The position numbers and the translations under genes were made by a program. The notes under the pieces were generated by a model, which searched no databases, was not told where the DNA came from, and worked only from the letters and a program-made list of their open reading frames with translations. Of a stretch of 64,000 bases of DNA, positions 20,109-50,034 are shown piece after piece. How positions within the stretch are numbered: position 1 is the stretch's first letter; every line of letters begins with the position of its first letter. Source of the stretch: Hemiscyllium ocellatum (Eukaryota); assembly GCF_020745735.1 (NCBI RefSeq), contig NC_083435.1, positions 37,907,090-37,971,089 on the forward strand, written 5' to 3'.

Positions 20109-21075
20109 TCACTGAACAATATGGTGAGACTACTCAAGGAATCCACCAGTTCTGAGGGATGATATTGATTTCTTTCAAACGATCTTCAAGTGTAAAATCA
20201 CTGATTTTAATAAGTCATCTTAAACTAATTTACGTGATGGGGAGTATGTTTGCTTTTGGCTCTGCAATTTTTGTAATTTTGCACCTTTTGATATTTTGTG
20301 TATTTCTGAGATGGTTTTAACTTTTACCTGTACTTGCTAATGAATTTATGTAGTTTTGACTTGGTTGTTCCAAAATAGCTGTTCCAACAATGTCAGATAT
20401 ACTGAAAAATGAAAAAAAAATGATGAATGAAAGAAAAGGGCCAGTTCAAATCTAATCTGCACAATTAGATGGTGTAGAGACCTCAATAGCTGAGCAGGAG
20501 GCTAGGCAAAGCCAGGGCTATTCAAGCTCAACCACTTGAAGAATTGACAGTTATTTAGTTGAGATTTGGAACTTCAGCTACCTTGTACTAAAGAGCAGAC
20601 ACACACCTTATGCCCAACTCTGTTAACTGTGTATCCCAAATAACAAAACACACAGCAAATTCTCGTCCTCAACCCTGAGTCCATGTGGAACGCCACAAGT
20701 CAGAACTCAACCTCTTTCCCAACTTGCTTTCCATTCCATCTTCCTGATTTATCCTGGAAAATCTTGCAATTGGTGAAGTTATCTTGACCTCGAGATGTTG
20801 GAATATCACAATTTTAACATTTGGACTCAGCGTAATACAGAGATTAGCGCCGCCACATAGATTCATTTTTGTAGAGGGCCTCTTCTGCAAGCCATATATT
20901 TCAACATGTTAGTAAGAATTTTTGCAAGTGGGAGTTTTGGGATTTGAAGTAGATAGTGCTGTTAAGGATAATGACATTCAATATAACTTTAATTTCATGT
21001 GATACATGCACTGTCTTTTACTATTCTGTAAATGCTTATTGGTGTGAATAAAATTTCCCTCCTTAACTCTTTGTT
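20109..21075 (+). other. B2M: B2M exon 4 (non-coding 3' UTR) with poly(A) signal
   Basis: Strong T-tract plus CAG acceptor ending at 20108 (99-nt intron); AATAAA at 21047-21052 with U/GU-rich sequence downstream. The 3' end is approximate. Confidence 0.7.
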
Positions 21076-21535: not shown

Positions 21536-22299
21536 AAACTTAGTAGGCAATACTCAAACCCAGTTATTTCCTGTTGTTTTATTCTGACCATTGATAGGGA
21601 GAAGAGATATTACCAGTAAAGGGTGGGGCAAGACAGCTATCCATCTTGAGACGTTTTCAATACGGAGCCGAGCTGCTCCAAGCTGTATGATTAATACCTG
21701 AATAACAGCTTATTGGCAAGAATAGTCCCTCAGGCCTGACAGACAGCATCACAACAACAGTATCGGTTGCCTATAAAACACCCTAAGCAATTCACAAACG
21801 TATTGAACAAATGTAATCGTCCAAGCCTCGGGAGGAGAGATGAGAGTGCTTGTTCAAATGCTGGGACCAAATAGAATGGTCGACAGGGAATCAAGAGAGG
21901 ACTGGGAGCAAATTCCGTACCTTAGAGCCTTGGAAGTTGAAGGCATCTCTCCTAATGATATGCTGCTTAAATTGGAAATGTGTAGAATATCATGGTTTGG
22001 AAAATATAGATATTTCTAAAGTTATAAGGCACAAAAAGTTTATACATGACAGAACAGACTAAGTCCAGAGGCCTCAGCCTCCGAGTGAAGGAACAACCCC
22101 TGAGAACTGAGATGAGGAATTTCTTCAACCAGGGACTGGTTAAACGACAGAACTCATTGCCACAGATGGCTGGAGAGGCCAAGTCATTGAGAACATTTTT
22201 ATAGATACACAGATTATTGATTGGAAAGGGGATCATAGGTTGCAGCAGAAGGCAGGAGTCAGGGGTTGAGAAACAAATCATCCAGGAGGATTTCAGCTT

Positions 22300-22658
22300 T
22301 AGGGAGAGGCAGAACAGGCTGGGGATGTTTTCCCCAGAGCACAGAGGCTGAGGGGTGACCTTACAGAGGTTTATAAAATCATCAGAGGCATGGATAGGGC
22401 AAATAGACAAGGTCTTTTTCATGGAGTGGGGGAGTCCAGAACTAGAGAGCATAGGTTCAGGATGAGGGGCAAAAGATATTCAGGGGACATAAGGGACAAC
22501 GTATTCACGCAGAGGGTGGTGCATGTATGGAATGAGCTGCCACAGGAAGTGGTGGAGACTGGTACAATGACAGCATTTAAAAGACATTTGGATATGGGCC
22601 AAGTGTGAGCAAGTGGGACTAGATTAGGATGGGGCATCTGGTCAGCATGCTGTACATC
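22300..22658 (+). mobile_element. CR1-type LINE 3' fragment abutting the satellite
   Basis: ORF 22390-22608 (VFTQRVVHVWNELPQEVVE...FKRHLD); the tail gctgtacatc runs directly into the first repeat unit. Confidence 0.85.
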
Positions 22659-25600
22659 AGTGTCAATGATCACACATTACCGAGAGAGACGGGACAGTGA
22701 GGATCAGTGTCAGTGATCACACATTACCGGGAGAGAGGGGACAGTGACGATCATGTCAGTGATCACACGTTACCGAGAGAGACGTGACAGTGACGATCAG
22801 AGTCAGCGAACACACATTACCGGGAGAGAGGGGACAGCGACGATCAGTGTCAGTGATCACACATTACCGGGAGGGAGGGGACAGTGACGATCAGTGTCAG
22901 TGATCACACATTACCAGGAGAGAGGGGACAGTGACGATCCGTGTCAGCGAACACACATTACCGCGAGAGAGGGGACAGTGACGATCAGTGTCAGTGATCA
23001 CACATTACCGGCAGAGAGGGGACAGTGACGGTCAGTGTCAGTGATCACACATTAGCGGGAGTGACGGGATAGTGACGATCAGTGTCAGTGATCACACATT
23101 AACGGCAGAGAGGGGACAGTGACGGTCAGTGTCAGTGATCACACATTAGCGGGAGCGACGGGACAGTGACGGTCAGTGTCAGTGATCACACATTACCGGG
23201 AGAGAGGGGACAGTGACGATCAGTGTCAGTGATCACACATTACCGGGAGAGACGGGACAGTGACGGTCAGTGTCAGTGATCACACATTACCGGGAGAGAG
23301 GGGACAGTGACGGTCAGTGTCAGTGATCACACATTACTGGGAGAGAGGGGACAGTGACGGTCAGTGTCAGTGATCACACATTACCGGGAGAGAGGGGACA
23401 GTGACGGTCAGTGTCAGTGATCACACATTACCGGGAGGGTGGGGACAGTGACGGTCAGTGTCAGTGATCACACATTACCGGGATAGAGGGGACAGTGACG
23501 ATCAGTGTCAGTGATCACACAATACCGGGAGAGACGGGACAGTGACGGTCAGTGTCAGTGATCACACATTACCGGGAGAGAGGGGACAGTGACGGTCAGT
23601 GTCAGTGATCACACATTACTGGGAGAGAGGGGACAGTGACGGTCAGTGTCAGTGATCACACATTACCGGGAGAGAGGGGACAGTGACGGTCAGTGTCAGT
23701 GATCACACATTACCGGGAGAGAGGGGTCAGTGACGATCAGTGTCAGTGATCACACATTACCGGGAGAGAGGGGACAGTGACGATCAGTGTCAGTGATCAC
23801 ACATTACCGGGAGAGAGGGGACAGTGACGATCAGTGTCAGTGATCACACATTACCGGGAGAGAGGGGACAGTGACGGTCAGTGTCAGTGATCACACATTA
23901 CCGGGAGGGGCGGGACAGTGACGATCAGTGTCAGTGATCGCACATTACCGGGAGAGAGGGGACAGTGACGATCAGTGTCAGTGATCACACATTACCGGGA
24001 GAGAGGGGACAGTGACGGTCAGTGTCAGTGGTCACACATTACCGGGAGAGAGGGGACAGTGACGATCAGTGTCAGTGATCACACATTACCGGGAGAGACG
24101 GGACAGTGACGGTCAGTGTCAGTGATCACACATTACCGGGAGAGAGGGGACAGTGACGATCAGTGTCAGTGATCACACATTACCGGGAGAGAGGGGACAG
24201 TGTCGATCAGTGTCAGTGATCACACATTATCAGGAGAGACGGGACAGTGAGGATCAGTGTCAGTGATCACACATTACCGGGAGAGAGGGGACAGTGATGA
24301 TCAGTGTCAGTGATCGCACATTACCGGGAGAGAGGGGACAGTGACGGTCAGTGTCAGTGATCACACATTACCGGGAGAGAGGGGACAGTGACGACCCGTG
24401 TCAGTGATCACACATTACCGGGAGAGAGGGGACAGTGACGATCAGTGTCAGTGATCACACATTACCGGGAGAGAGGGGTCAGTGAGGATCAGTGTCAGTG
24501 ATCACACATTACCGGGAGAGAGGGGACAGTGACGGTCAGTGTCAGTGATCACACATTAACGGGAGAGACGGGACAGTGACGGTCAGTGTCAGTGATCACA
24601 CATTACCGGGAGAGAGGGGTCAGTGAGGATCAGTGTCAGTGATCACACATTACCGGGAGAGAGGGGACAGTGACGATCAGTGTCAGTGATCACACATTAC
24701 CGGGAGAGAGGGGTCAGTGAGGATCAGTGTCAGTGATCACACATTACAGGGAGAGACGGGACAGTGACGGTCAGTGTCAGTGATCACACATTACCGGGAG
24801 GGATGGGACAGTGAGGATCAGTGTCAGTGATCACACATTACCGGGATAGAGGCGACAGTGACAGTCAGTGTCAGTGATCACACATTACCGGGAGAGACGG
24901 GACAGTGACGGTCAGTGTCAGTGATCACACATTACCGGGAGAGAGGGGACAGTGACGGTCAGTGTCAGTGATCACACATTACCGGGAGAGAGGGGACAGT
25001 GACGATCAGTGTCAGTGATCACACATTACCGGGAGAGAGGGGACAGTGACGATCAGTGTCAGTGATCACACATTACAGGGAGAGACGGGACAGTGACGGT
25101 CAGTGTCAGTGATCACACATTACAGGGAGAGAGGGGACAGTGACGGTCAGTGTCAGTGATCACACATTACCGGGAGAGAGGGGACAGTGACGGTCAGTGT
25201 CAGTGATCACACATTACCGGGAGAGAGGGGACAGTGACGGTCAGTGTCAGTGATCACACATGACCGTGAGAGAGGACAGTGACGATCAGTGTCAGTGATC
25301 ACACATTACCGGGAGAGAGGGGACAGTGACGATCAGTGTCAGTGATCACACATTACCGGGAGAGACGGGACAGTGACGATCAGTGTCAGTAATCACACAT
25401 TACCGGGAGAGAGGGGACAGTGACGGTCAGTGTCAGTAATCACACATTACCGGGAGAGAGGGGACAGTGACGATCAGTGTCAGTGATCACACATTACCGG
25501 GAGAGAGGGGACAGTGACGGTCAGTGTCAGTGATCACACATTACCGGGAGAGAGGGGACAGTGACGGTCAGTGTCAGTGATCACACATTACCGGGAGTGA

Positions 25601-28600
25601 CGGGACAGTGACGGTCAGTGTCAGTAATAACACATTACCGGGAGTGACGGGACAGTGACGGTCAGTGTCAGTGATCACACATTACCGGGAGAGAGGGGAC
25701 AGTGACGATCAGTGTCAGTGATCACACATTACCGGGAGAGAGGGGACAGTGACGATCAGTGTCAGTGATCACACATTACCGGGAGAGACGGGACAGTGAC
25801 GATCAGTGTCAGTGATCACACATTACCGGGAGGGATGGGACAGTGACGGTCAGTGTCAGTGATCACACTTTACCGGGAGAGAGGGGACAGTGACGATCAG
25901 TGCCAGTGATCACACATTACCGGGAGAGAGGGGACAGTGACGGTCAGTGTCAGTGATCACACATTACCGGGAGAGAGGGGACAGTGACGGTCAGTGTCTG
26001 TGATCACACATTACCGGGAGTGAGGGTCAGTGACGGTCAGTGTCAGTGATCACACATTACCGGGAGAGAGGGGACAGTGACGGTCAGTGTCTGTGATCAC
26101 ACATTACCGGGAGAGAGGGGACAGTGACGATCAGTGTCAGTGATCACACATTACCGGGAGAGAGGGGACAGTGACGATCAGTGTCAGTGATCACACATTA
26201 CCGGGAGAGAGGGGACAGTGACGACCCGTGTCAGTGATCACACATTACCGGGAGAGAGGGGGCAGTGACGGTCAGTGTCAGTGATCACACATTACCGGGA
26301 GAGAGGGGACAGTGACGTTCAGTGTCAGTGATCACACATTACCGGGAGAGAGGGGTCAGTGAGGATCAGTGTCAGTGATCACACATTACCGGGAGAGAGG
26401 GGACAGTGACGTTCAGTGTCAGTGATCACACATTACCGGGAGGGATGGGACAGTGAAGATCAGTGTCAGTGATCACACATTACTGGGATAGAGGGGACAG
26501 TGACGGTCAGTGTCAGTGATCACACATTACCGGGAGAGAGGGGACAGTGACGATCAGTGTCAGTGATCACACATTATCAGGAGAGATGGGACAGTGACAA
26601 TCCGTGTCAGTGATCACACATTACCGGGAGAGAGGGGTCAGTGACGGTCAGTGTCTGTGATCACACATTACCGGGAGAGAGGGGACAGTGACGATCAGTG
26701 TCAGTGATCACACATTACCGGGAGAGAGGGGACAGTGACGATCAGTGTCAGTGATCACACATTACCGGGAGAGAGGGGACAGTGACGACCCGTGTCAGTG
26801 ATCACACATTACCGGGAGAGAGGGGGCAGTGACGGTCAGTGTCAGTGATCACACATTACCGGGATAGAGGGGACAGTGACGTTCAGTGTCAGTGATCACA
26901 CATTACCGGGAGAGAGGGGTCAGTGAGGATCAGTGTCAGTGATCACACATTACCGGGAGAGAGGGGACAGTGACGTTCAGTGTCAGTGATCACACATTAC
27001 CGGGAGGGATGGGACAGTGAGGATCAGTGTCAGTGATCACACATTACTGGGATAGAGGGGACAGTGACGGTCAGTGTCAGTGATCACACATTACCGGGAG
27101 AGAGGGGACAGTGACGATCAGTGTCAGTGATCACACATTATCAGGAGAGATGGGACAGTGACAATCCGTGTCAGTGATCACACATTACCGGGAGAGAGGG
27201 GTCAGTGACGATCAGTGTCAGTGATCACACATTACCGGGAGAGAGGGGACAGTGACGATCAGTGTCAGTGATCACACATTACCGGGAGAGAGGGGACAGT
27301 GACGATCAGTGTCAGTGACCACACATTACCGGGAGAGAGGGGACAGTGACGGTCAGTGTGTGATCACACATTACCGGGAGAGACGGGACAGTTACGATCT
27401 GTGTCAGTGGTCACACATTACCGGGAGTGACGGGACAGTGACGATCAGTGTCAGTGATCACACATTACCGGGAGAGAGGGGACAGTGACGGTCAGTGTCA
27501 GTGATCACACATTACCGGGAGAGAGGGGACAGTGACGGTCAGGGTCAGTGATCACACATTACCGGGAGAGAGGGGACAGTGACGGTCAGGGTCAGTGATC
27601 ACACATTACCGGGAGAGACGGGACAGTGACGGTCAGTGTCAGTGATCACACATTACCGGGAGCGAGGGGACAGTGACGATCAGTGTCAGTGATCACACAT
27701 TACCGGCAGAGAGGGGACAGTGACGCTCAGTGTCAGTGATCACACATTACCGGGATAGAGGGGACAGTGACAGTCAGTGTCTGTGATAACACATTACCGG
27801 GAGAGAGGGGACAGTGACGATCAGTGTCAGTGATCACACATTACCGGGAGAGAGGGGACAGTGACGGTGAGTGTCAGTGATCACACATTACCGGGAGAGA
27901 GGCGACAGTGACGGTCAGTGTCAGTGATCACACATTACCGGGAGAGAGGGGTCAGTGACGATCAGTGTCAGTGATCACACATTACCGGGAGAGACGGGAC
28001 AGTGACGGTCAGTGTCAGTGATCAGACATTACCGGGAGAGAGGGGACAGTGACGGTCAGTGTCAGTGATCACACATTACCGGGAGGGAGGGGACAGTGAC
28101 GATCAGGGTCAGTGATCACACATTACCGGGAGAGAGGGGACAGTGACGGTCAGTGTCAGTGATCACACATTACCGGGAGAGAGGGGACAGTGACGATCAG
28201 TGTCAGTGATCACACATTACCGGGAGAGAGGGGACAGTGACGATCAGTGTCAGTGATCACACATTACCGGGAGAGAGGGGACAGTGACGGTCAGGGTCAG
28301 TGATCACACATTACCGGGAGAGAGGGGACAGTGACGGTCAGGGTCAGTGATCACACATTACCGGGAGAGACGGGACAGTGACGATCCGTGTCAGTGATCA
28401 CACATTACCGGGAGAGAGGGGACAGTGACGATCAGTGTCAGTGATCACACATTACCGGGAGTGACGGGACAGTGACGGTCAGTGTCAGTGATCACACATT
28501 ACCGGGAGAGAGGGGACAGTGACGGTCAGTGTCAGTGATCACACATTACCGGGAGAGAGGGGACAGTGACGTTCAGTGTCAGTGATCACACATTACCGGG

Positions 28601-31600
28601 AGAGAGGGGACAGTTACGATCTGTGTCAGTGGTCACACATTACCGGGAGAGACGGGACAGTGACGGTCAGTGTCAGTGATCACACATTACCGGGAGAGAG
28701 GGGACAGTGACGGTCAGTGTCAGTGATCACACATTAGCGGGAGGGAGGGGACAGTGACGAACAGGGTCAGTGATCACACATTACCGGGAGAGAGGGGACA
28801 GTGACGGTCAGTGTCAGTGATCACACATTACCGGGAGGGAGGGGACAGTGACGATCAGTGTCAGTGATCACACATTACCGGGAGAGAGGGGACAGTGAGG
28901 ATCAGTGTCAGTGATCACACATTACCGGGATAGAGGGGACAGTGACGATCAGTGTCAGTGATCACACATTACCGGGAGAGAGGGGACAGTGACGGTCAGT
29001 GTCAGTGATCACACATTACCGGGAGAGAGGGGACAGTGACGGTCAGTGTCAGTGATCAGACATTACCGGGGGAGAGGGGACAGTGACGGTCAGTGTCAGT
29101 GATCAGACATTACCGGGAGAGACGGGATAATGAGGATCAGTGTCAGTGAGCACACATTACCGGGAAAAACAGTACAGTGACAGTCAGTGTCAGTGATCAC
29201 ACATTACCGGGAGAGAGGGGTCAGTGACGGTCAGTGTCAGTGATCACACATTACCGGGAGAGACGGGACAGTGACGGTCAGTGTCAGTGATCACACATTA
29301 CCGGGAGAGACGGGACAGTGACGATCCGTGTCAGTGATCACACATTACCGGGAGAGAGGGGACAGTGACGATCAGTGCCAGTGATCAAACATTACCGGGA
29401 GAGAGGGGTCAGTGATGATCTGTGTCAGTCGTCACACATTACCGGGAGAGACGGGACAGTTACGATCAGTGTCAGTCGTCACACATTACCGGGAGTGACG
29501 GGACAGTGACGATCCGTGTCAGTGATCACACATTACCGGGAGTGAGGGGACAGTGACGGTCAGTGTCAGTGATCACACATTACCGGGAGAGAGGGGACAG
29601 TGACGGTCAGTGTCAGTGATCACACATTACCGGGAGTGACGGGACAGTGACGGTCAGTGTCAGTGATCACACATTACCGGGAGAGAGGGGACAGTGACGA
29701 TCAGTGTCAGTGATCACACATTACCGGGAGAGAGGGGACAGTGACGATCAGTGTCAGTGATCACACATTACCGGGAGAGAGGGGACAGTGACGGTCAGTG
29801 TCAGTGATCACACATTACCGGGAGTGACGGGACAGTGACGGTCAGTGTCAGTGATCACACATTACCGGGAGTGAGGGGACAGTGACGATCAGTGTCAGTG
29901 ATCACACATTACCGGGAGAGAGGGGACAGTGACGGTCAGTGTCAGTGATCACACATTACCGGGAGAGAGGGGACAGTGACGATCAGTGTCAGTGATCACA
30001 CATTACCGGGAGTGACGGGACAGTGACGGTCAGTGTCAGTGATCACACATTACCGGGAGAGACGGGACAGTGACGATCAGTGTCAGTGATCACACATTAC
30101 CGGGAGAGACGGGACAGTGACGATCAGTGTCAGTGATCACACATTACCGGGAGAGAGGGGACAGTGAGGATCAGTGTCAGTGATCACATATTACCAGGAG
30201 AGACGGGACAGTGACGATCAGTGTCAGTGATCACACATTACCGGGAGAGAGGGGACAGTGAGGATCAGTGTCAGTGATCACATATTACCGGGAGAGAGGG
30301 GACAGTGACGATCAGTGTCAGTGATCACACATTACCGGGAGAGAGGGGACAGTGACGATCAGTGTCAGTGATCCCACATTACCGGGAGAGAGGGGACAGT
30401 GACGATCAGTGTCAGTGATCACACATTACCGGGAGAGAGGGGACAGTGAGGATCAGTGTCAGTGATCACACATTACCGGGAGAGAGGGGACAGTGACGGT
30501 CAGTGTCAGTGATCACACATTACCGGGAGAGACGGGACAGTGACGGTCAGTGTCAGTGATCACACATTACCGGGAGAGAGGGGACAGTGACGATCAGTGT
30601 CAGTGATCACACATTACCGGGAGGGGCGGGACAGTGACGGTCAGTGTCAGTGATCACACATTACCGGGAGAGAGGGGCCAGTGACGGTCAGTGTCAGTGA
30701 TCACACATTACCGGGAGTGACGGGACAGTGACGATCAGTGTCAGTGATCACACATTACCGGGAGAGACGGGACAGTGACGATCAGTGTCAGTGATCATAC
30801 ATTACCGGGAGAGAGGGGTCAGTGAGGATCATTGTCAGTGATCACACATTACCGGGAGAGAGGGGACAGTGACGGTCAGTGTCAGTGATCACACATTACC
30901 GGGAGTGACGGGACAGTGACGATCAGTGTCAGTGATCGCACATTACCGGGAGAGACGGGACAGTGACGGTCAGTGTCAGTGATCATACATTACCGGGAGA
31001 GAGGGGTCAGTGAGGATCATTGTCAGTGATCACACATTACCGGGAGAGACGGGACAGTGACGATCAGTGTCAGTGATCACACATTACCGGGAGGGACGGG
31101 ACAGTGACGATCAGTGTCAGTGATCGCACATTACCGGGAGAGAGGGGACAGTGACCGTCAGTGTCAGTGATCACACATTACCGGGAGAGACGGGACAGTG
31201 ACGGTCAGTGTCAGTGATCAGACATTACCGGGAGAGAGGGGACAGTGACGGTCAGTGTCAGTGATCACACATTACCGGGAGGGAGGGGACAGTGACGATC
31301 AGTGTCAGTGATCACACATTACCGGGAGAGAGGGGAAAGTGACGGTCAGTGTCAGTGATCACACATTACCGGGATAGAGGGGACAGTGACGATCCGTGTC
31401 AGTGATCACACATTACCGGGAGAGAGGGGACAGTGACGATCAGTGTCAGTGATCACACATTACCGGGAGAGAGGCGACAGTGACGGTCAGTGTCAGTGAT
31501 CACACAATACCGGGAGGGATGGGACAGTGAGGATCAGTGTCAGTGATCACACATTACCGGGATAGAGGGGACAGTGACGATCAGTGTCAGTGATCACACA

Positions 31601-34600
31601 TTACCGGGAGAGAGGGGACAGTGTCGATCAGTGTCAGTGATCACACATTATCAGGAGAGACGGGACAGTGAGGATCAGTGTCAGTGATCACACATGACCG
31701 TGAGAGAGGACAGTGACAGTCAGTGTCAGTGATCAGACATTACCGGGAGAGAGGGGACAGTGACGGTCAGTGTCAGTGATCACACATTACCGGGAGAGAG
31801 GGGACAGTGACGATCAGTGTCAGTGATCACACATTACCGGGAGAGACGGGACAGTTACGATCAGTGTCAGTCGTCACACATTACCGGGAGTGACGGGACA
31901 GTGACGGTCAGTGTCAGTGATCACACATTACCGGGAGAGACGGGACAGTGACGATCAGTGTCAGTGATCACACATTACCGGGAGAGAGGGGTCAGTGACG
32001 GTCAGTGTCAGTGATCACACATTACCGGGAGAGAGGGGACAGTGACGATCAGTGTCAGTGATCACACATTACCGGGAGTGACGGGACAGTGACGATCAGT
32101 GTCAGTGATCACACATTACCGGGAAAAACAGTACAGTGACAGTCAGTGTCAGTGATCACACATTACCGGCAGAGAGGGGTCAGTGACGGTCAGTGTCAGT
32201 GATCACACATTACCGGGAGAGACGGGACAGTGACGGTCAGTGTCAGTGATCACACATTACCGGGAGAGACGGGACAGTGACGATCCGTGTCAGTGATCAC
32301 ACATTACCGGGAGAGAGGGGACAGTGACGATCAGTGCCAGTGATCAAACATTACCGGGAGAGAGGGGTCAGTGATGATCTGTGTCAGTCGTCACACATTA
32401 CCGGGAGAGACGGGACAGTTACGATCAGTGTCAGTCGTCACACATTACCGGGAGTGACGGGACAGTGACGATCCGTGTCAGTGATCACACATTACCGGGA
32501 GTGAGGGGACAGTGACGGTCAGTGTCAGTGATCACACATTACCGGGAGAGAGGGGACAGTGACGGTCAGTGTCAGTGATCACACATTACCGGGAGTGACG
32601 GGAAAGTGACGGTCAGTGTCAGTGATCACACATTACCGGGAGTGAGGGGACAGTGACGATCAGTGTCAGTGATCACACATTACCGGGAGAGAGGGGACAG
32701 TGAGGATCAGTGTCAGTGATCACACATTACCGGGAGTGACGGGACAGTGACGGTCAGTGTCAGTGATCACACATTACCGGGAGTGAGGGGACAGTGACGA
32801 TCAGTGTCAGTGATCACACATTACCGGGAGAGAGGGGACAGTGACGGTCAGTGTCAGTGATCACACATTACCGGGAGAGAGGGGACAGTGACGGTCAGTG
32901 TCAGTGATCACACATTACCGGGAGAGAGGGGACAGTGACGATCAGTGTCAGTGATCACACATTACCGGGAGTGACGGGACAGTGACGGTCAGTGTCAGTG
33001 GTCACACATTACCGGGAGAGAGGGGACAGTGAGGATCAGTGTCAGTGATCACATATTACCGGGAGAGAGGGGACAGTGACGATCAGTGTCAGTGATCACA
33101 CATTACCGGGAGAGAGGGGACAGTGACGATCAGTGTCAGTGATCACATATTACCGGCAGCGAGGGGTCAGTGACGATCAGTGTCAGTGATCCCACATTAC
33201 CGGGAGAGAGGGGACAGTGACGATCAGTGTCAGTGATCACACATTACCGGGAGAGAGGGGACAGTGACGATCAGTGTCAGTGATCACACATTACCGGGAG
33301 GGGCGGGACAGTGACGGTCAGTGTCAGTGATCACACATTACCGGGAGAGAGGGGCCAGTGACGATCAGTGTCAGTGATCACACATTACCGGGAGTGACGG
33401 GACAGTGACGATCAGTGTCAGTGATCACACATTACCGGGAGAGACGGGACAGTGACGATCAGTGTCAGTGATCATACATTACCGGGAGAGAGGGGTCAGT
33501 GAGGATCATTGTCAGTGATCACACATTACCGGGAGAGAGGGGACAGTGACGGTCAGTGTCAGTGATCACACATTACCGGGAGTGACGGGACAGTGACGAT
33601 CAGTGTCAGTGATCGCACATTACCGGGAGAGACGGGACAGTGACGATCAGTGTCAGTGATCATACATTACCGGGAGAAAGGGGTCAGTGAGGATCATTGT
33701 CAGTGATCACACATTACCGGGAGAGACGGGACAGTGACGATCAGTGTCAGTGATCACACATTACCGGGAGGGACGGGACAGTGACGATCAGTGTCAGTGA
33801 TCGCACATTACCGGGAGAGAGGGGACAGTGACCGTCAGTGTCAGTGATCACACATTACCGGGAGAGACGGGACAGTGACGGTCAGTGTCAGTGATCAGAC
33901 ATTACCGGGAGAGAGGGGACAGTGACGGTCAGTGTCAGTGATCACACATTACCGGGAGGGAGGGGACAGTGACGATCAGTGTCAGTGATCACACATTACC
34001 GGGAGAGAGGGGACAGTGACGGTCAGTGTCAGTGATCACACATTACCTGGAGGGATGGGACAGTGAGGATCAGTGTCAGTGATCACACATTACCGGGATA
34101 GAGGGGACAGTGACGATCAGTGTCAGTGATCACACATTACCGGGAGAGAGGCGACAGTGACGGTCAGTGTCAGTGATCACACATTACCGGGAGGGATGGG
34201 ACAGTGAGGATCAGTGTCAGTGATCACACATTACCGGGATAGAGGGGACAGTGACGATCAGTGTCAGTGATCACACATTACCGGGAGAGAGGGGACAGTG
34301 TCGATCAGTGTCAGTGATCACACATTATCAGGAGAGACGGGACAGTGAGGATCAGTGTCAGTGATCACACATGACCGTGAGAGAGGACAGTGACAGTCAG
34401 TGTCAGTGATCACACATTACCGGGAGAGAGGGGACAGTGACGATCAGTGTCAGTGATCACACATTACCGGGAGAGACGGGACAGTGACGATCCGTGTCAG
34501 TGATCACACATTACCGGGAGAGAGGGGACAGTGACGATCAGTGTCAGTGATCACACATTACCGGGAGAGAGGGGACAGTGACGGTCAGTGTCAGTGATCA

Positions 34601-37600
34601 CACATTACCGGGAGAGAGGGGACAGTGACGTTCAGTGTCAGTGATCACACATTACCGGGAGAGAGGGGACAGTGACGTTCAGTGTCAGTGATCACACATT
34701 ACCGGGAGAGAGGGGACAGTGTCGATCAGTGTCAGTGATCACACATTATCAGGAGAGACGGGACAGTGAGGATCAGTGTCAGTGATCACACATTACCGGG
34801 AGAGAGGGGACAGTGACGGTCAGTGTCAGTGATCACACATTACCGGGAGAGAGGGGACAGTGACGATCAGTGTCAGTGATCACACATTACCGGGAGTGAC
34901 GGGACAGTGACGGTCAGTGTCAGTGATCACACATTACCGGGAGAGAGGGGACAGTGACGATCAGTGTCAGTGATCACCCATTACCGGGAGAGAGGGGACA
35001 GTGACGGTCAGTGTCAGTCGTCACACATTACCGGGAGAGAGGGGACAGTGAGGATCAGTGTCAGTGATCACACATTACCGGGAGAGACGGGACAGTGACG
35101 GTCAGTGTCAGTGATCACACATTACCGGGAGAGAGGGGACAGTGACGATCAGTGTCAGTGATCACACATTACCGGGAGTGACGGGACAGTGACGGTCAGT
35201 GTCAGTGATCAGACATTACCGGCAGCGAGGGGTCAGTGACGATCAGTGTCAGTGATCACACATTACCGGGAGAGAGGGGACAGTGACGATCAGTGTCAGT
35301 GATCACACATTACCGGGAGAGACGGGACAGTGACGGTCAGTGTCAGTGATCACACATTACCGGGAGAGAGGGGACAGTGACGGTCAGTGTCAGTGATCAC
35401 ACATTACCGGGAGAGAGGGGACAGTGACGGTCAGTGTCAGTGATCACACATTACCGGGAGAGAGGGGACAGTGAGGATCAGTGTCAGTGATCACACATTA
35501 CCGGGAGTGACGGGACAGTGACGGTCAGTGTCAGTGATCACACATTACCGGGAGTGACGGGACAGTGACGGTCAGTGTCAGTGATCACACATTACCGGGA
35601 GAGAGGGGACAGTGAGGATCAGTGTCAGTGATCACCCATTACCGGGAGAGAGGGGACAGTGACGGTCAGTGTCGGTGATCACACATTACCGGGAGAGACG
35701 GGACAGTGACGATCAGTGTCAGTGATCATACATTACCGGGAGAGAGGGGTCAGTGAGGATCAGTGTCAGTGATCACACATTTCCGGGAGAGAGGGGTCAG
35801 TGACGGTCAGTGTCAGTGATCACGCATTTCCGGGAGAGAGGGGTCAGTGACGGTCAGTGTCAGTGATCACACATTACCGGGAGAGAGGGGACAGTGACGA
35901 TCAGTGCCAGTGATCACACATTACCGGGAGAGACGGGACAGTGACGGTCAGGGTCAGTGATCACACATTACCGGGAGAGAGGGGACAGTGACGATCAGGG
36001 TCAGTGATCACACATTACCGGGAGAGAGGGGACAGTGACGATCAGGGTCAGTGATCACACATTACAGGGAGAGACGGGACAGTGACAATCCGTGTCAGTG
36101 ATCACACATTACCGGGAGAGAGGGGACAGTGACGATCAGTGTCAGTGATCACACATTACCGGGAGAGAGGGGACAGTGACGATCAGTGTCAGTGATCACA
36201 CATTACCGGGAGTGACGGGACAGTGACGGTCAGTGTCAGTGATCACACATTACCGGGAGAGAGGGGACAGTGACGATCAGTGTCAGTGATCACACATTAC
36301 CGGGAGAGAGGGGACAGTGACGGTCAGTGTCAGTGATCACACATTACCGGGAGAGAGGGGACAGTGACGATCAGTGTCAGTGATCACACATTACCGGGAG
36401 AGAGGGGACAGTGACGATCAGTGTCAGTGATCACACATTACCGGGAGTGAGGGGACAGTGACGATCAGTGTCAGTGATCACACATTACCGGGAGAGAGGG
36501 GACAGTGACGGTCAGTGTCAGTGATCACACATTACCGGGAGTGAGGGGACAGTGACGATCAGTGTCAGTGATCACACATTACCGGGAGAGACGGGACAGT
36601 GACGGTCAGTGTCAGTGATCACACATTAACGGGAGAGACGGGACAGTGACGGTCAGTGTCAGTGATCACACATTACCGGGAGAGAGGGGACAGTGACGAT
36701 CAGTGTCAGTGATCACACATTACCGGGAGGGAGGGGACAGTGACAGTCAGTGTCAGTGATCATACATTACCGGGAGAGAGGGGACAGTGACGATCAGTGT
36801 CAGTGATCACACATTACCGGGAGAGACGGGACAGTGACGGTCAGTGTCAGTGATCACATATTACCGGGAGAGAGGGGACAGTGACGATCAGTGTCAGTGA
36901 TCACACATTACCGGGAGGGAGGGGACAGTGACGATCAGTGTCAGTGATCACACATTACCGGGAGAGAGGGGACAGTGACGATCAGTGTCAGTGATCACAC
37001 ATTATCAGGAGAGAGGGGACAGTGACGATCAGTGTCAGTGATCACACATTACCGGGAGAGACGGGACAGTGACGGTCAGTGTCAGTGATCAGACATTACC
37101 GGGAGAGAGGGGACAGTGACGATCAGTGTCAGTGATCACACATTACCGGGAGAGAGGGGACAGTGACGGTCAGTGTCAGTGATCACACGTTACCGGGAGA
37201 GAGGGGACAGTGACGGTCAGTGTCAGTGATCACACATTACCGGGAGAGACGGGACAGTGACGGTCAGTGTCAGTGATCACACATTACCGGGAGGGAGGGG
37301 ACAGTGACGGTCAGTGTCAGTGATCACACATTACCGGGAGAGACGGGACAGTGACGATCAGTGTCAGTGATCACACATTACCGGGAGAGAGGGGACAGTG
37401 ACGATCAGTGTCAGTGATCACACATTACCAGGAGTGACGGGACAGTGACGGTCAGTGTCAGTGATCACACATTACCGGGAGAGACGGGACAGTGACGATC
37501 CGTGTCGGTGATCACACATTACCGGGAGAGATGGGACAGTGACGGTCAGTGTCAGTGATCACACATTACCGGGAGAGAGGGGACAGTGACGGTCAGTGTC

Positions 37601-40600
37601 AGTGATCACACATTACCGGGAGAGAGGGGACAGTGACGGTCAGTGTCAGTGATCACACATTACCGGGAGAGAGGGGACAGTGACGATCAGTGTCAGTGAT
37701 CACACATTACCGGGAGTGACGGGACAGTGACGGTCAGTGTCAGTGGTCACACATTACCGGGAGAGAGGGGACAGTGAGGATCAGTGTCAGTGATCACATA
37801 TTACCGGGAGAGAGGGGACAGTGACGATCAGTGTCAGTGATCACACATTACCGGGAGAGAGGGGACAGTGACGATCAGTGTCAGTGATCACATATTACCG
37901 GCAGCGAGGGGTCAGTGACGATCAGTGTCAGTGATCCCACATTACCGGGAGAGAGGGGACAGTGACGATCAGTGTCAGTGATCACACATTACCGGGAGAG
38001 AGGGGACAGTGACGATCAGTGTCAGTGATCACACATTACCGGGAGGGGCGGGACAGTGACGGTCAGTGTCAGTGATCACACATTACCGGGAGAGAGGGGC
38101 CAGTGACGATCAGTGTCAGTGATCACACATTACCGGGAGTGACGGGACAGTGACGATCAGTGTCAGTGATCACACATTACCGGGAGAGACGGGACAGTGA
38201 CGATCAGTGTCAGTGATCATACATTACCGGGAGAGAGGGGTCAGTGAGGATCATTGTCAGTGATCACACATTACCGGGAGAGAGGGGACAGTGACGGTCA
38301 GTGTCAGTGATCACACATTACCGGGAGTGACGGGACAGTGACGATCAGTGTCAGTGATCGCACATTACCGGGAGAGACGGGACAGTGACGATCAGTGTCA
38401 GTGATCATACATTACCGGGAGAAAGGGGTCAGTGAGGATCATTGTCAGTGATCACACATTACCGGGAGAGACGGGACAGTGACGATCAGTGTCAGTGATC
38501 ACACATTACCGGGAGGGACGGGACAGTGACGATCAGTGTCAGTGATCGCACATTACCGGGAGAGAGGGGACAGTGACCGTCAGTGTCAGTGATCACACAT
38601 TACCGGGAGAGACGGGACAGTGACGGTCAGTGTCAGTGATCAGACATTACCGGGAGAGAGGGGACAGTGACGGTCAGTGTCAGTGATCACACATTACCGG
38701 GAGGGAGGGGACAGTGACGATCAGTGTCAGTGATCACACATTACCGGGAGAGAGGGGACAGTGACGGTCAGTGTCAGTGATCACACATTACCTGGAGGGA
38801 TGGGACAGTGAGGATCAGTGTCAGTGATCACACATTACCGGGATAGAGGGGACAGTGACGATCAGTGTCAGTGATCACACATTACCGGGAGAGAGGCGAC
38901 AGTGACGGTCAGTGTCAGTGATCACACATTACCGGGAGGGATGGGACAGTGAGGATCAGTGTCAGTGATCACACATTACCGGGATAGAGGGGACAGTGAC
39001 GATCAGTGTCAGTGATCACACATTACCGGGAGAGAGGGGACAGTGTCGATCAGTGTCAGTGATCACACATTATCAGGAGAGACGGGACAGTGAGGATCAG
39101 TGTCAGTGATCACACATGACCGTGAGAGAGGACAGTGACAGTCAGTGTCAGTGATCACACATTACCGGGAGAGAGGGGACAGTGACGATCAGTGTCAGTG
39201 ATCACACATTACCGGGAGAGACGGGACAGTGACGATCCGTGTCAGTGATCACACATTACCGGGAGAGAGGGGACAGTGACGATCAGTGTCAGTGATCACA
39301 CATTACCGGGAGAGAGGGGACAGTGACGGTCAGTGTCAGTGATCACACATTACCGGGAGAGAGGGGACAGTGACGTTCAGTGTCAGTGATCACACATTAC
39401 CGGGAGAGAGGGGACAGTGACGTTCAGTGTCAGTGATCACACATTACCGGGAGAGAGGGGACAGTGTCGATCAGTGTCAGTGATCACACATTATCAGGAG
39501 AGACGGGACAGTGAGGATCAGTGTCAGTGATCACACATTACCGGGAGAGAGGGGACAGTGACGGTCAGTGTCAGTGATCACACATTACCGGGAGAGAGGG
39601 GACAGTGACGATCAGTGTCAGTGATCACACATTACCGGGAGTGACGGGACAGTGACGGTCAGTGTCAGTGATCACACATTACCGGGAGAGAGGGGACAGT
39701 GACGATCAGTGTCAGTGATCACCCATTACCGGGAGAGAGGGGACAGTGACGGTCAGTGTCAGTCGTCACACATTACCGGGAGAGAGGGGACAGTGAGGAT
39801 CAGTGTCAGTGATCACACATTACCGGGAGAGACGGGACAGTGACGGTCAGTGTCAGTGATCACACATTACCGGGAGAGAGGGGACAGTGACGATCAGTGT
39901 CAGTGATCACACATTACCGGGAGTGACGGGACAGTGACGGTCAGTGTCAGTGATCAGACATTACCGGCAGCGAGGGGTCAGTGACGATCAGTGTCAGTGA
40001 TCACACATTACCGGGAGAGAGGGGACAGTGACGATCAGTGTCAGTGATCACACATTACCGGGAGAGACGGGACAGTGACGGTCAGTGTCAGTGATCACAC
40101 ATTACCGGGAGAGAGGGGACAGTGACGGTCAGTGTCAGTGATCACACATTACCGGGAGAGAGGGGACAGTGACGGTCAGTGTCAGTGATCACACATTACC
40201 GGGAGAGAGGGGACAGTGAGGATCAGTGTCAGTGATCACACATTACCGGGAGTGACGGGACAGTGACGGTCAGTGTCAGTGATCACACATTACCGGGAGT
40301 GACGGGACAGTGACGGTCAGTGTCAGTGATCACACATTACCGGGAGAGAGGGGACAGTGAGGATCAGTGTCAGTGATCACCCATTACCGGGAGAGAGGGG
40401 ACAGTGACGGTCAGTGTCGGTGATCACACATTACCGGGAGAGACGGGACAGTGACGATCAGTGTCAGTGATCATACATTACCGGGAGAGAGGGGTCAGTG
40501 AGGATCAGTGTCAGTGATCACACATTTCCGGGAGAGAGGGGTCAGTGACGGTCAGTGTCAGTGATCACGCATTTCCGGGAGAGAGGGGTCAGTGACGGTC

Positions 40601-43600
40601 AGTGTCAGTGATCACACATTACCGGGAGAGAGGGGACAGTGACGATCAGTGCCAGTGATCACACATTACCGGGAGAGACGGGACAGTGACGGTCAGGGTC
40701 AGTGATCACACATTACCGGGAGAGAGGGGACAGTGACGATCAGGGTCAGTGATCACACATTACCGGGAGAGAGGGGACAGTGACGATCAGGGTCAGTGAT
40801 CACACATTACAGGGAGAGACGGGACAGTGACAATCCGTGTCAGTGATCACACATTACCGGGAGAGAGGGGACAGTGACGATCAGTGTCAGTGATCACACA
40901 TTACCGGGAGAGAGGGGACAGTGACGATCAGTGTCAGTGATCACACATTACCGGGAGTGACGGGACAGTGACGGTCAGTGTCAGTGATCACACATTACCG
41001 GGAGAGAGGGGACAGTGACGATCAGTGTCAGTGATCACACATTACCGGGAGAGAGGGGACAGTGACGGTCAGTGTCAGTGATCACACATTACCGGGAGAG
41101 AGGGGACAGTGACGATCAGTGTCAGTGATCACACATTACCGGGAGAGAGGGGACAGTGACGATCAGTGTCAGTGATCACACATTACCGGGAGAGAGGGGA
41201 CAGTGACGGTCAGTGTCAGTGATCACACATTACCGGGAGAGAGGGGACAGTGACGATCAGTGTCAGTGATCACACATTACCGGGAGAGAGGGGACAGTGA
41301 CGATCAGTGTCAGTGATCACACATTACCGGGAGTGAGGGGACAGTGACGATCAGTGTCAGTGATCACACATTACCGGGAGAGAGGGGACAGTGACGGTCA
41401 GTGTCAGTGATCACACATTACCGGGAGTGAGGGGACAGTGACGATCAGTGTCAGTGATCACACATTACCGGGAGAGACGGGACAGTGACGGTCAGTGTCA
41501 GTGATCACACATTAACGGGAGAGACGGGACAGTGACGGTCAGTGTCAGTGATCACACATTACCGGGAGAGAGGGGACAGTGACGATCAGTGTCAGTGATC
41601 ACACATTACCGGGAGGGAGGGGACAGTGACAGTCAGTGTCAGTGATCATACATTACCGGGAGAGAGGGGACAGTGACGATCAGTGTCAGTGATCACACAT
41701 TACCGGGAGAGACGGGACAGTGACGGTCAGTGTCAGTGATCACATATTACCGGGAGAGAGGGGACAGTGACGATCAGTGTCAGTGATCACACATTACCGG
41801 GAGGGAGGGGACAGTGACGATCAGTGTCAGTGATCACACATTACCGGGAGAGAGGGGACAGTGACGATCAGTGTCAGTGATCACACATTATCAGGAGAGA
41901 GGGGACAGTGACGATCAGTGTCAGTGATCACACATTACCGGGAGAGACGGGACAGTGACGGTCAGTGTCAGTGATCAGACATTACCGGGAGAGAGGGGAC
42001 AGTGACGATCAGTGTCAGTGATCACACATTACCGGGAGAGAGGGGACAGTGACGGTCAGTGTCAGTGATCACACGTTACCGGGAGAGAGGGGACAGTGAC
42101 GGTCAGTGTCAGTGATCACACATTACCGGGAGAGACGGGACAGTGACGGTCAGTGTCAGTGATCACACATTACCGGGAGGGAGGGGACAGTGACGGTCAG
42201 TGTCAGTGATCACACATTACCGGGAGAGACGGGACAGTGACGATCAGTGTCAGTGATCACACATTACCGGGAGAGAGGGGACAGTGACGATCAGTGTCAG
42301 TGATCACACATTACCAGGAGTGACGGGACAGTGACGGTCAGTGTCAGTGATCACACATTACCGGGAGAGACGGGACAGTGACGATCCGTGTCGGTGATCA
42401 CACATTACCGGGAGAGATGGGACAGTGACGGTCAGTGTCAGTGATCACACATTACCGGGAGAGAGGGGACAGTGAGGATCAGTGTCAGTGATCACACATT
42501 ACCGGGAGAGACGGGACAGTGACGATCCGTGTCGGTGATCACACATTACCGGGAGAGAGGGGACAGTGACGGTCAGTGTCAGTGATCACACATTACCGGG
42601 AGAGAGGGGACAGTGACAGTCAGTGTCAGTGATCACACATTACCGGAAGGATGGGACAGTGAGGATCAGTGTCAGTGATCACACATTACCGGGAGAGAGG
42701 GGACAGTGACGGTCAGTGTCAGTGATCACACATTACCGGGAGAGAGGGGACAGTGACGATCAGTGTCAGTGATCACACATTACCGGGAGAGAGGGGACAG
42801 TGACGATCCGTGTCAGTGATCACACATTACCGGGATAGAGGGGACAGTGACGATCAGTGTCAGTGATCACACATTACCGGGAGAGAGGGGACAGTGACGA
42901 TCAGTGTCAGTGATCACACATTACCGGGAGAGAGGGGACAGTGACGAACAGGGTCAGTGATCACACATTACCGGGAGAGAGGGGACAGTGACGATCAGTG
43001 TCAGTGATCACACATTACCGGGAGAGATGGGACAGTGAGGATCAGTGTCAGTGATCACACATTACCGGGAGAGAGGGGTCAGTGACGATCAGTGTCAGTG
43101 ATCACACATTACCGGGATAGAGGGGACAGTGACGGTCAGTGTCAGTGATCACACATTACCGGGAGAGAGGGGACAGTGACGGTCAGTGTCAGTGATCACA
43201 CATTACCGGGAGAGAGGGGTCAGTGACGATCAGTGTCTGTGATAACACATTACCGGGAGAGATGGGACAGTGACGGTCAGTGTCAGTGATCAGACATTAC
43301 CGGCAGCGAGGGGACAGTGACGATCCGTGTCAGTGATCACACATTACCGGGAGAGAGGGGACAGTTACGATCAGTGTCAGTGATCACACATTACCGGGAG
43401 AGAGGGGACAGTGACGATCAGTGTCTGTGATCACACATTACCGCGAGAGAGGGGATAATGAGGATCAGTGTCAGTGAGCACACATTACCGGGAAAAACAG
43501 TACAGTGACGGTCAGTGTCAGTGATCACACATTACCGGGAGAGATGGGTCAGTGACGGTCAGTGTCAGTGATCACACATTACCGGGAGAGAGGGGTCAGT

Positions 43601-45023
43601 GACGATCAGTGTCAGTGATCACACATTACCGGGAGAGAGGGGTCAGTGACGATCAGTGTCAGTGATCACACATTACCGGGATAGAGGGGACAGTGACGGT
43701 CAGTGTCAGTGATCACACATTACCGGGAGTGACGGGACAGTGACGATCAGTGTCAGTGATCACACATTACCGGGAGAGAGGGGACAGTGACAGTCAGTGT
43801 CAGTGATCACACCTTACCGGGATAGAGGGGACAGTGACGGTCAGTGTCAGTGATCACACATTACCGGGATAGAGGGGACAGTGACGATCCGTGTCAGTGA
43901 TCACACATTACCGGGATAGAGGGCACAGTGACGATCAGTGTCAGTGATCACACATTACCGGGAGAGAGGGGACAGTGACGATCCGTGTCAGTGATCACAC
44001 ATTACCGGGAGAGAGGGGACAGTGACGATCAGTGTCAGTGATCACACATTACCGGGAGGGAGGGGACAGTGACGGTCAGTGTCAGTGATCACACATTACC
44101 GGGAGAGAGGGGACAGTGACGATCAGTGTCAGTGATCACACATTATCAGGAGAGACGGGACAGTGACGGTCAGTGTCAGTGATCACACATTACCGGGAGA
44201 GAGGGGACAGTGACGGTCAGTGTCAGTGATCACACATTACCGGGAGAGAGGGGACAGTGACGGTCAGTGTCAGTGATCACACATTACCGGGAGAGAGGGG
44301 ACAGTGACGATCAGTGTCAGTGATCACACATTACCGGGAGTGAGGGGACAGTGAGGATCAGTGTCAGTGATCACACATTACCGGGAGTGAGGGGACAGTG
44401 ACGATCAGTGTCAGTGATCACACATTACCGGGAGAGAGGGGACAGTGACGATCAGTGTCAGTGATCACACATTACCGGGAGAGAGGGGACAGTGACGATC
44501 AGTGTCAGTGATCACACATTACCGGGAGTGACGGGACAGTGACGATCAGTGTCAGTGATCACACATTACCGGGAGTGACGGGACAGTGACGATCAGTGTC
44601 AGTGATCACACATTACCGGGAGAGAGGGGACAGTGACGATCAGTGTCAGTGATCACACATTACCGGGAGAGAGGGGACAGTGACGATCCGTGTCAGTGAT
44701 CACACATTACCGGGAGAGAGGGGACAGTGAGGATCAGTGTCAGTGATCACACTTTACCGGGAGAGAGGACACAGTGACGATCAGTGTCAGTGATCACACT
44801 TTACCGGGAGAGAGGACACAGTGACGATCAGTGTCAGTGATCACACATTACCGGGAGAGAGGACACAGTGACGGTCAGTGTCAGTGATCACACATTACCG
44901 GGAGAGAGGGGACAGTGACGATCAGTGTCAGTGATCACACATTACCGGGAGAGAGGACACAGTGACGATCAGTGTCAGTGATCACACATTACCGGGAGAG
45001 AGGGGACAGTGACGCTCAGTGAT
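22658..45023 (+). repeat. Giant 47-bp minisatellite array, ~475 units, ~22.4 kb
   Basis: Consensus GATCACACATTACCGGGAGAGAGGGGACAGTGACG(A/G)TCAGTGTCAGT; period 47 (e.g. 23231 to 23278). Stops occur in all frames on both strands and the ORF track is empty here. Confidence 0.99.
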
Positions 45024-45459
45024 AGTCATTGCCTCGTGTTTGCACAGTGAGATTGTTACTTGGTCCCGTCACCGTGAGCCTGAATATTGGCCAGATTTTG
45101 TTTCATTTAAACATGGACTGCTTCTGTATGTGAGGAGTTGCCAATCCTGCTGAACATTGTGTAATCATCGGTGAACATCCCCACCCTGACCTTCTCATGA
45201 AGGGAATGTCCTTGATGAAGCAGCTGAGGATGGGTGGGCCTAGGACAGAGATGTCCTGGAGCTGAGATGTCTGCCCTGCAACAGCCATGACTATCTTCCT
45301 AAATTCCCTGTTTCACTCCAACCAGCAGTGGGTTTGCCCCTCATCCTCATTGATTCCTGTTTTACTGCGGCTCCTTGATGCCACATTTAGTCGGGTGATA
45401 AATACATCACCATTTCTTCACTGTCACTGGGTCACAATCCTGGAATACCCTCCCTTAGG

Positions 45460-49645: not shown

Positions 49646-49657
49646 AAGGCCATTCCT

Positions 49658-50013: not shown

Positions 50014-50034
50014 GGCGTTGCACACAGTGTGGTT

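Follow-up and report, generated by a model that had tools for sequence, protein, structure and literature searches.

Downstream of B2M in the epaulette shark, Hemiscyllium ocellatum, a 47-bp unit is repeated head to tail 476 times in an unbroken array. We consider it likely that this array is a lineage-specific, non-coding, GC-rich minisatellite that was amplified from one old intergenic 47-bp stretch, which lies ~5.5 kb beyond B2M next to an antisense LINE reverse-transcriptase (RT) remnant and probably belongs to that remnant. The amplification appears to be lineage specific because the zebra shark and the whale shark have a single proto-unit, without an array, at the orthologous B2M locus. 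The window referred to throughout is the whole 64,000-nucleotide stretch of contig NC_083435.1 that was analyzed; the features that matter most are these.

18285..18569, + strand: B2M exon 2 (Ig C1-set domain), from protein and Pfam matches
21047..21052, + strand: AATAAA hexamer, a possible poly(A) signal of B2M; the array starts 1.6 kb further on
22285..22655, + strand: left flank, 5'-truncated LINE 3' end, common to Chiloscyllium punctatum
22656..45021, + strand: tandem array, 476 x 47 bp, from Tandem Repeats Finder (TRF), segmentation, and core matching
45015..45454, - strand: right flank, made up of a decayed partial unit and then an antisense LINE RT remnant, from orthology

The array and its setting

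The extent of the array (22656-45021, 22,366 bp) was recovered in several ways. TRF run on the window reported a period of 47, 476.1 copies, 93% matches, 0% indels, and a score of 38733. Unit-by-unit segmentation gave 476 contiguous units, 468 of them exactly 47 bp long and 8 with deletions of 1 to 2 bp, all on the + strand (476/476) and with no foreign sequence inserted anywhere in the 22.4 kb. Matching with a 41-nt unit core (up to 3 mismatches allowed) found 436 copies where 0 were expected. A preliminary description of this DNA, which spoke of about 22 kb in some 475 homogeneous 47-bp units, was therefore accurate. The + strand of the array is 62.6% purine, its GC content is 53.9%, and its 1046 CpGs give an observed/expected (o/e) ratio of 0.70. 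These values satisfy the formal definition of a CpG island (GC >50%, CpG o/e >0.6, length >200 bp), a prediction from composition that arises because the amplified unit carries two CpGs.

The gene upstream of the array is genuinely B2M. Its exon at 18285-18569 matches nurse-shark B2M (6LUO, E = 3e-46) and the Pfam C1-set domain (E = 1.7e-18), and it is identical at 92/92 residues to H. ocellatum XP_060706761.1. The preliminary description had put the array 1.6 kb past the B2M poly(A) signal; the gene and the distance to the AATAAA are as described, while the hexamer itself is a candidate signal. That description had also called the locus MHC linked, and this stands by way of B2M, which is MHC linked across all elasmobranchs surveyed (PMC10751288).

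No Rfam family was found within the window. A shark Y-chromosome satellite with a 46-bp unit (PMC11406177) has no sequence relationship to the array. The unit core had 0 matches in JGI metagenome contigs, junction ORFs of the array are not on record in public contigs, and a protein word search with the 46-aa array translation for satellite-bearing contigs returned no candidate; these blanks carry little weight.

Unit variants and block duplications

The units fall into 141 distinct types and depart from the consensus at a mean of ~3.8% per site. The two commonest types (69 and 66 copies) differ solely at position 1, which is A or G in 58 and 40% of units. Position 35 is G, C, or T (70, 26, and 4%), and non-consensus bases occur at positions 32 (19%), 46 (11%), and 39 (9%), with most of the remaining positions variant in fewer than 3% of units. 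The concentration of variation at a few positions and the MVR-style code that had been noted earlier are thus both apparent. A short higher-order period, for instance an alternation of A and G units, was dismissed, as autocorrelation is near 0. Taking a minisatellite to have head-to-tail units of 10 to 100 bp in an array of 0.5 to 30 kb, a kilobase-range length at a euchromatic, gene-adjacent locus, and interspersed unit variants giving an MVR-type map, we find a 47-bp period in 476 head-to-tail units, 22,366 bp near B2M, and 141 types whose variant sites lack short-range periodicity.

On a larger scale, runs of units recur as blocks, all on the + strand.

32847..37544, + strand: copy A of a block duplication, units 217-316, from unit identity
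37592..42430, + strand: copy B, units 318-420, an exact repeat of copy A in which units 290-292 are present twice
26083..27210, + strand: older 12-unit (564-bp) tandem block duplication, 2 differences
30593-31297 = 33270-33974 = 38015-38719, + strand: 15-unit block repeat, from unit comparison
29230-29605 = 32189-32564, + strand: 8-unit block repeat, from unit comparison

In copies A and B, units 217-292 are the same as 318-393 and units 290-316 the same as 394-420, with 0 differences over 4.8 kb (~100 units). The block duplications are nested and multi-unit, and the 4.8-kb duplication with zero differences is the youngest. An identity this long is also a structure that assemblers can create or collapse, and it is a ground for supposing that assembly error has shaped part of the length or internal structure of the array, for instance this exact 4.8-kb duplicate. 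We see only a small chance of this. The 141 unit types in non-periodic order give a unique map for most of the array, and the duplicate has a 3-unit offset and is accompanied by older, diverged block repeats, as expected from real unequal exchange. In addition, eight same-organism sequencing runs, taken from four samples, contain 34 to 47% of the sampled words (all runs used for word sharing were Logan contigs).

A single-copy ancestor in zebra and whale sharks

The zebra shark (L001) and whale shark (L003) loci align colinearly with the window in two stretches, one that starts upstream of B2M and ends at position 22290 and one from 44959 to ~46580, and TRF found no tandem array downstream of B2M in either locus. 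The unit core has one match in each. In the whale shark, the 47-bp proto-unit differs from the array consensus at 5 positions, and there is an additional, more diverged copy that is the product of a local duplication. Ancestral states persist in the array as minority variants (26% of units have C at position 35), and the A at position 1 is a state also present in the zebra and whale shark relatives. Being absent from both of these sharks, the array is not an ancient feature conserved at the B2M locus.

The whale shark proto-unit has the 8-bp sequence AGACTGGA on either side as a direct repeat, at L003 18479 and 18526; the two copies match in 8/8 positions and are spaced 47 bp apart. The zebra shark has 7/8 versions of it at 18991 and 19038, again 47 bp apart, as has the second whale shark copy at the same spacing. 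By a rough estimate, the chance of such a direct repeat at the proto-unit site is ~1e-3. The model of Haber and Louis calls for direct repeats of 5 to 10 bp on both sides of a single-copy progenitor, one unit length apart, and this is the arrangement found. With that model as a template (the model of Taylor and Breden is related), the first duplication was most likely an event between the two 8-bp repeats, either slippage during replication or an unequal exchange. Growth and homogenization would then have proceeded several units at a time, by gene conversion and by unequal exchange between sister chromatids or alleles; the block duplications of 8, 12, 15, and ~100 units are the presumed traces.

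What the proto-unit itself derives from is suggested by the right flank, whose orthologs are L001 19050-19535 in the zebra shark and L003 18930-19423 in the whale shark. A zebra shark ORF in this stretch, L001:19157-19315(-), matches RVT_1 (E = 6e-5) at profile positions 118-163 of 205; the match scores 23.2 bits, under the Pfam gathering score of 29.6, and its 53 codons cover the neighbor of the proto-unit and exclude the unit. Since the match occupies only profile positions 118-163, the rest of the domain would extend into the proto-unit. The proto-unit thus adjoins a putative antisense LINE RT remnant and, judging by position, is probably itself part of it.

The left edge has a different history. 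There a LINE tail runs into the first array unit at a deletion junction that shows ATC microhomology. In C. punctatum (L004), the same LINE fragment leads into 1.45 kb of sequence that aligns colinearly with the zebra and whale sharks and is missing from the window. Because C. punctatum has both the tail and the 1.45 kb that the epaulette shark lacks, the juxtaposition of tail and array is a deletion junction, specific to the Hemiscyllium lineage. The left-flank LINE tail was for the same reason ruled out as the seed of the array.

Several properties indicate that the array is young. It contains no foreign insertion in 22.4 kb, its CpG o/e of 0.70 is above that of the flanks (0.30 to 0.36), and the pairwise divergence of its units at non-hypervariable sites (3.7%) is below the flank divergence between the epaulette shark and C. 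punctatum (10 to 11%).

One locus or a dispersed family

The array could instead be one locus of a dispersed hemiscylliid satellite family with many arrays genome-wide. Low-coverage runs of two further organisms, B and C, contain 7 to 10% of the 31-mers sampled from 21700-25700, a share that equals the share of array words with a multiplicity of at least 10 to 20, and 0/926 flank words recur elsewhere in ~100 kb of shark sequence. Because the flank words do not recur and the shares match multiplicity, B and C probably carry amplified copies of the unit. A single array of 476 copies would nevertheless suffice for the observed word shares. A satellite family, moreover, sits poorly with a single-copy progenitor and its seeding direct repeat at exactly the B2M-downstream locus in two related species, and the other 41.6 kb of the window holds zero unit copies (in a sensitive local BLAST, the best match there was 13 nt, which is chance level). 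We therefore regard a dispersed family as unlikely and local amplification from the proto-unit as the better account.

Does the array act on B2M?

The preliminary description had suggested a hypervariable VNTR or a recombination or chromatin element, and had pointed to the half-CRE in the unit. In its fullest form, the array would be a functional, MHC-linked B2M element, that is, a hypervariable VNTR that influences B2M as a recombination hotspot, a chromatin boundary, or a transcription factor platform built on half-CRE and TGTCA sites. The motifs are certainly there: GTGATCAC occurs 418 times, and the half-CRE TGACG and TGTCA, said earlier to be present in nearly every unit, are found in 431 and 445 of the 476 units. 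The array also has the GC richness and strand asymmetry of human hypervariable minisatellites and the formal attributes of a CpG island (GC 54%, o/e 0.70), its G-rich strand forms stronger folds than shuffled sequences do (z = -4.2, with a diffuse ensemble), and the DNA on its far side from B2M can be aligned with that of other sharks.

We nonetheless judge such an element quite improbable. The zebra and whale sharks have a working B2M locus without the array, and the motifs are 5-mers present in the single-copy ancestor or one step away from it; the half-CRE site, for example, reads TGATG in both the zebra shark and the second whale shark copy. Because these 5-mers were inherited from single-copy LINE-adjacent sequence, a regulatory role drawn from them is unsupported. 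The full CRE, TGACGTCA, occurs 0 times in the array, which sets it apart from a CRE enhancer array, and canonical G4 motifs (four G-runs of at least 3, loops of 1 to 7 nt) number 0 on either strand, which sets it apart from a CEB1-like repeat. The alignable downstream DNA is ~73% conserved, no better than neutral flanks, and array words are nearly absent from two putative same-species RNA runs, although this last evidence is weak. With no full CRE or G4 and no counterpart array in the zebra or whale shark, a recombination, chromatin, or CRE-type role finds no backing here. An RSS-like reading of CAGTG was likewise dropped, as CACAGTG heptamers number only 5, all in end variants. Very unlikely, in our view, is the further proposal of a hypervariable MHC-linked minisatellite, common to hemiscylliid sharks, that modulates B2M through its length or its chromatin state, for instance by distancing downstream regulatory DNA or by serving as a boundary, prone to recombination, within the primordial MHC linkage group.

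By default, we take the array to be selectively neutral. It lies between genes and shows no evident interplay with gene structure. Its sole certain effect is the 22 kb that it adds between B2M and downstream DNA, a lengthening of the intergenic distance in one lineage, and no result points to the array altering how B2M works. Like other arrays of its kind, it is probably length polymorphic, and if so it would be a handy marker beside B2M in the shark MHC linkage group. Its wider interest is as a clean and datable case of minisatellite birth, with the progenitor, the 8-bp repeats, and the 476-copy product all found at one orthologous locus in three sharks.

Comparison with known minisatellites

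The closest parallels are the GC-rich hypervariable minisatellites of humans (Jeffreys-type VNTRs) such as MS32/D1S8, CEB1, and MS1. Like these, the shark array has a unit of tens of base pairs within an array of kilobases to tens of kilobases, and it shares with them GC richness, purine/pyrimidine strand asymmetry, an MVR-type variant map, and multi-unit gains. It differs in lacking the Jeffreys core and a canonical G4 motif; at 22 kb it stands at the upper end of the class, a length known here from one assembled sequence.

Transposable elements (TEs) offer a second parallel. At least 23% of human minisatellites and satellites are TE derived, and younger TEs are likelier to generate tandem repeats (Ahmed and Liang 2012, PMC3389668). 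The progenitor of the shark array sits beside a decayed LINE RT fragment, of which it is probably a part, and the unit was duplicated locally, much as in such cases; unlike them, its source copy is old and dead, and the TE origin of the unit is read from its position.

The likeness to the Haber and Louis model, read from the single-copy and 476-copy states, lies in the 8-bp direct repeat that brackets the progenitor at one-unit spacing and in the incomplete right terminal unit. In sum, the array downstream of epaulette shark B2M is a real but ordinary repeat that belongs to the known minisatellite class.

The array and its neighboring gene

The tandem array lies at 22656-45021, where Tandem Repeats Finder gives a period of 47, 476.1 copies, 93% matches, no indels, and a score of 38733. 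Because a fixed 47-bp register slips along the array, each unit was delimited in turn by comparison with the consensus, which yielded 476 contiguous units, all on the plus strand; 468 are exactly 47 bp long, 8 carry 1- to 2-bp deletions, and likeness to the unit is lost after unit 476. The units fall into 141 distinct types, the two commonest of which (69 and 66 copies) differ solely at position 1.

Positions of the 47-bp unit at which variation is concentrated
Position 1: A 58%, G 40%
Position 35: G 70%, C 26%, T 4%
Position 32: non-consensus in 19%
Position 46: non-consensus in 11%
Position 39: non-consensus in 9%

Most remaining sites vary in <3% of units (mean over sites, 3.8% per site). 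The large 47-bp array of the preliminary description, with its variation at a few positions, is thus borne out. Sensitive local BLAST of the other 41.6 kb of the window found no unit homologues past 13-nt chance matches. The array has a GC content of 54%, strong GC and AT skews, a purine share of 62.6% on the plus strand, and a CpG observed/expected ratio of 0.70 versus 0.30 to 0.36 in the flanks.

Features surrounding the array
12606-14298 (-): two neighboring ORFs (274 and 282 aa) that mark a retroelement lying between B2M and the start of the window
18258-18572: ORF containing the Ig C1-set exon of B2M (Pfam E=1.7e-18)
21047: AATAAA, candidate poly(A) signal, 1.6 kb upstream of the array
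22285-22655: left flank, 3' end of another LINE, with further copies at 47.4-49.0 kb
45103-45288 (-): LINE remnant in the right flank
49636-50015: another tandem repeat (21-bp unit, 18 copies) within a LINE ORF remnant
49492-50160 (+): ORF spanning the 21-bp repeat as a 7-residue repeat (GLRDHHT-like)
60015-63959 (-): uninterrupted 1314-aa ORF in a block of 62% GC

With exon 2 alone as the query, the best solved relative of the C1-set exon is nurse-shark beta-2-microglobulin (6LUO, E=3e-46), and the exon is the same as XP_060706761.1 ("beta-2-microglobulin-like [Hemiscyllium ocellatum]") at 92/92 residues, which identifies the window as epaulette shark DNA. Linkage of B2M to the MHC holds in every elasmobranch surveyed (PMC10751288), which agrees with the earlier placement of the array at an MHC-linked locus. 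An 867-bp scaffold from an ENA metagenome (L002) holds an intronless 123-aa B2M ORF with 92% identity to exon 2, presumably a transcript or eDNA of a closely related shark. The retroelement reading of 12606-14298 comes from a match of its first ORF to RVT_1 (E=1.9e-10). Judged by eye, the 1314-aa ORF resembles a LINE ORF2 with endonuclease and reverse transcriptase and, if it is one, is possibly a young LINE copy.

The same locus in other sharks

Shark B2M proteins were found by word search with exon 2, with species names taken from cluster look-up, and three loci were compared: those of zebra shark (L001), whale shark (L003), and Chiloscyllium punctatum (L004, from an older short-read assembly), the last on a scaffold that stops ~720 bp short of the proto-unit site described below. 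The zebra and whale shark loci are colinear with the window at 70 to 80% identity from far upstream of B2M to 22290, and colinearity picks up again from 44959 to ~46580, which shows orthology on each side of the array. In neither shark is B2M followed by a tandem array. The core of the unit instead has one match per locus (L001 19013; L003 18501), ~5.5 kb past B2M, precisely at the point where alignment with the right flank sets in again. This single copy, or proto-unit, is 47 bp long, has 5 differences from the array consensus in whale shark, and is followed by sequence common to the epaulette shark right flank (alignment A2).

Another proto-unit copy, more diverged than the first, lies ~400 bp farther along in whale shark and was produced by a local duplication of ~170 bp around an inserted element of ~230 bp. 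At L003 18479-19040 the proto-unit and ~120 bp of right flank occur twice with the element between them, a whale-shark-specific duplication at the very spot that turned into an array in epaulette shark. In C. plagiosum, a 330-aa gene without a match in a Pfam search is called 4.4 to 5.4 kb downstream of B2M, approximately at the expected site of the proto-unit or array, so the locus may be different there.

On its right, the array is flanked by an antisense LINE remnant. A zebra shark ORF, L001:19157-19315(-), retains a GVPQGSVLGP...F-DY box and matches RVT_1 (E=6e-5, profile positions 118 to 163 of 205, below the gathering threshold); in its epaulette shark homologue, 45103-45288(-), decay has gone further and a Pfam search found no match. 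The proto-unit lies ~59 to 75 codons past this box in the LINE sense, where the RT domain would be expected to end, a position suggesting that the array unit is probably LINE derived.

The left edge has a different history. C. punctatum matches the window at 89 to 90% as far as 22647 and so has the same LINE fragment, past which it runs on for 1.45 kb colinear with L001 16778-18235 and L003 16354-17799. This stretch is missing from epaulette shark (window 22647-22656 versus L004 15956-17453), so at least 1.45 kb, or ~2.4 kb if measured against zebra shark, was deleted from between a unit and the tail of the LINE in the Hemiscyllium lineage. ATC is common to both sides of the junction, and 31 bp are missing from within the epaulette shark LINE tail when it is compared with that of C. 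punctatum. Outgrowth of the array from the left-flank LINE tail was considered and rejected, as the junction is a deletion and 1.45 kb intervenes in C. punctatum.

Array words in other sequencing runs

Sampled 31-mers from 21700-25700 were found in three groups of runs, all of them Logan contigs of runs of 1.9 to 4.2 Gbases.

Holders of the sampled 31-mers
Organism A: 8 runs, 4 samples, 2 studies; 34-47%
Organism B: 9 holding runs, 4 studies; 7-10%
Organism C: 3 runs; 7%

No RNA runs were among the holders. Of the distinct query words, 43% come from the flank and 57% from the array; array words with a multiplicity of ≥10 account for 9.9% of the query, and those of ≥20 for 7.0%. Only 2.5% of query words are common to the orthologous C. 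punctatum flank, none occur in zebra or whale shark, and none of 926 flank words recur elsewhere in the shark DNA compared. These shares and multiplicities, with the rarity of flank words, make it fairly likely that organisms B and C are close relatives with many copies of the unit.

Function and significance

The motifs highlighted earlier are indeed abundant: GTGATCAC occurs 418 times in the array, and the TGACG half-CRE and TGTCA occur 431 and 445 times in 476 units, in keeping with their presence in nearly every copy. These "sites" are 5-mers passed on by a junk progenitor: zebra shark and whale shark copy 2 both have TGATG in place of TGACG. The full CRE, TGACGTCA, does not occur in the array, and scanning both strands found no canonical G4 motif. 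A palindrome of 8 bp, like that of the unit, is expected by chance in ~1 in 6 47-mers (our rough estimate). In folding, the G-rich strand outperforms its shuffled versions (z = -4.2), but its ensemble is diffuse; the opposite strand does not (z = +0.5). Downstream alignable DNA is conserved no more than neutral flanks in the zebra and whale shark comparison.

Given the inherited 5-mers, the missing CRE and G4 motifs, this neutral level of conservation, and the absence of the array from two related sharks, nothing favors a function. Of the preliminary description's reading, the minisatellite at an MHC-linked gene stands, while the recombination or chromatin role is unsupported. The sole certain consequence of the array is 22 kb of added spacing. 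Its value is as a neat illustration of minisatellite birth across three species and, possibly, as a marker.

Growth and age

No short higher-order period was found in the array, which does contain nested block repeats.

Block repeats within the array
12-unit tandem duplication: 2 differences
Blocks of 15 and of 8 units: recur at distances of 2.7-7.4 kb
32847-37544 and 37592-42430: duplication of ~100 units, zero differences, 3-unit offset

Such nesting is the expected trace of unequal exchange or replication-based multi-unit gains, by either of which the array would have grown. Pairwise divergence among units is 3.7% (42 non-hypervariable sites) versus 10 to 11% between epaulette shark and C. 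punctatum flanks; by this crude clock, coalescence of the units present today falls well after the split of the two species, through recent growth or ongoing homogenization. The 22.4-kb array contains no TE insertions, and CpG transitions are modestly raised (~3% G-to-A versus 0.6% at other sites), both of which fit an array that is young or still actively turning over.

Origin of the array

Whale shark has the octamer AGACTGGA at 18479 and again at 18526, a spacing of exactly 47 bp, with the two copies on either side of the proto-unit and in the same register as the array junction. Zebra shark and the second whale shark copy have 7/8 versions at the same 47-bp spacing; we roughly estimate the chance of such a repeat at the proto-unit site at ~1e-3. 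The array junction reads AGAGGGGA, and 26% of units have AGACGGGA, which is one step away from the ancestral octamer; C at position 35 is thus an ancestral state that persists as a variant, and so is A at position 1.

The initiating event was probably replication slippage between the octamers around the proto-unit, giving the first duplication. In the slippage model, flanking direct repeats of 5 to 10 bp allow the intervening segment to be duplicated (PMC3389668). The direct repeats of whale and zebra sharks are the substrate that this model needs, and the noncontiguous-repeat model, summarized in the same paper, is close to it.
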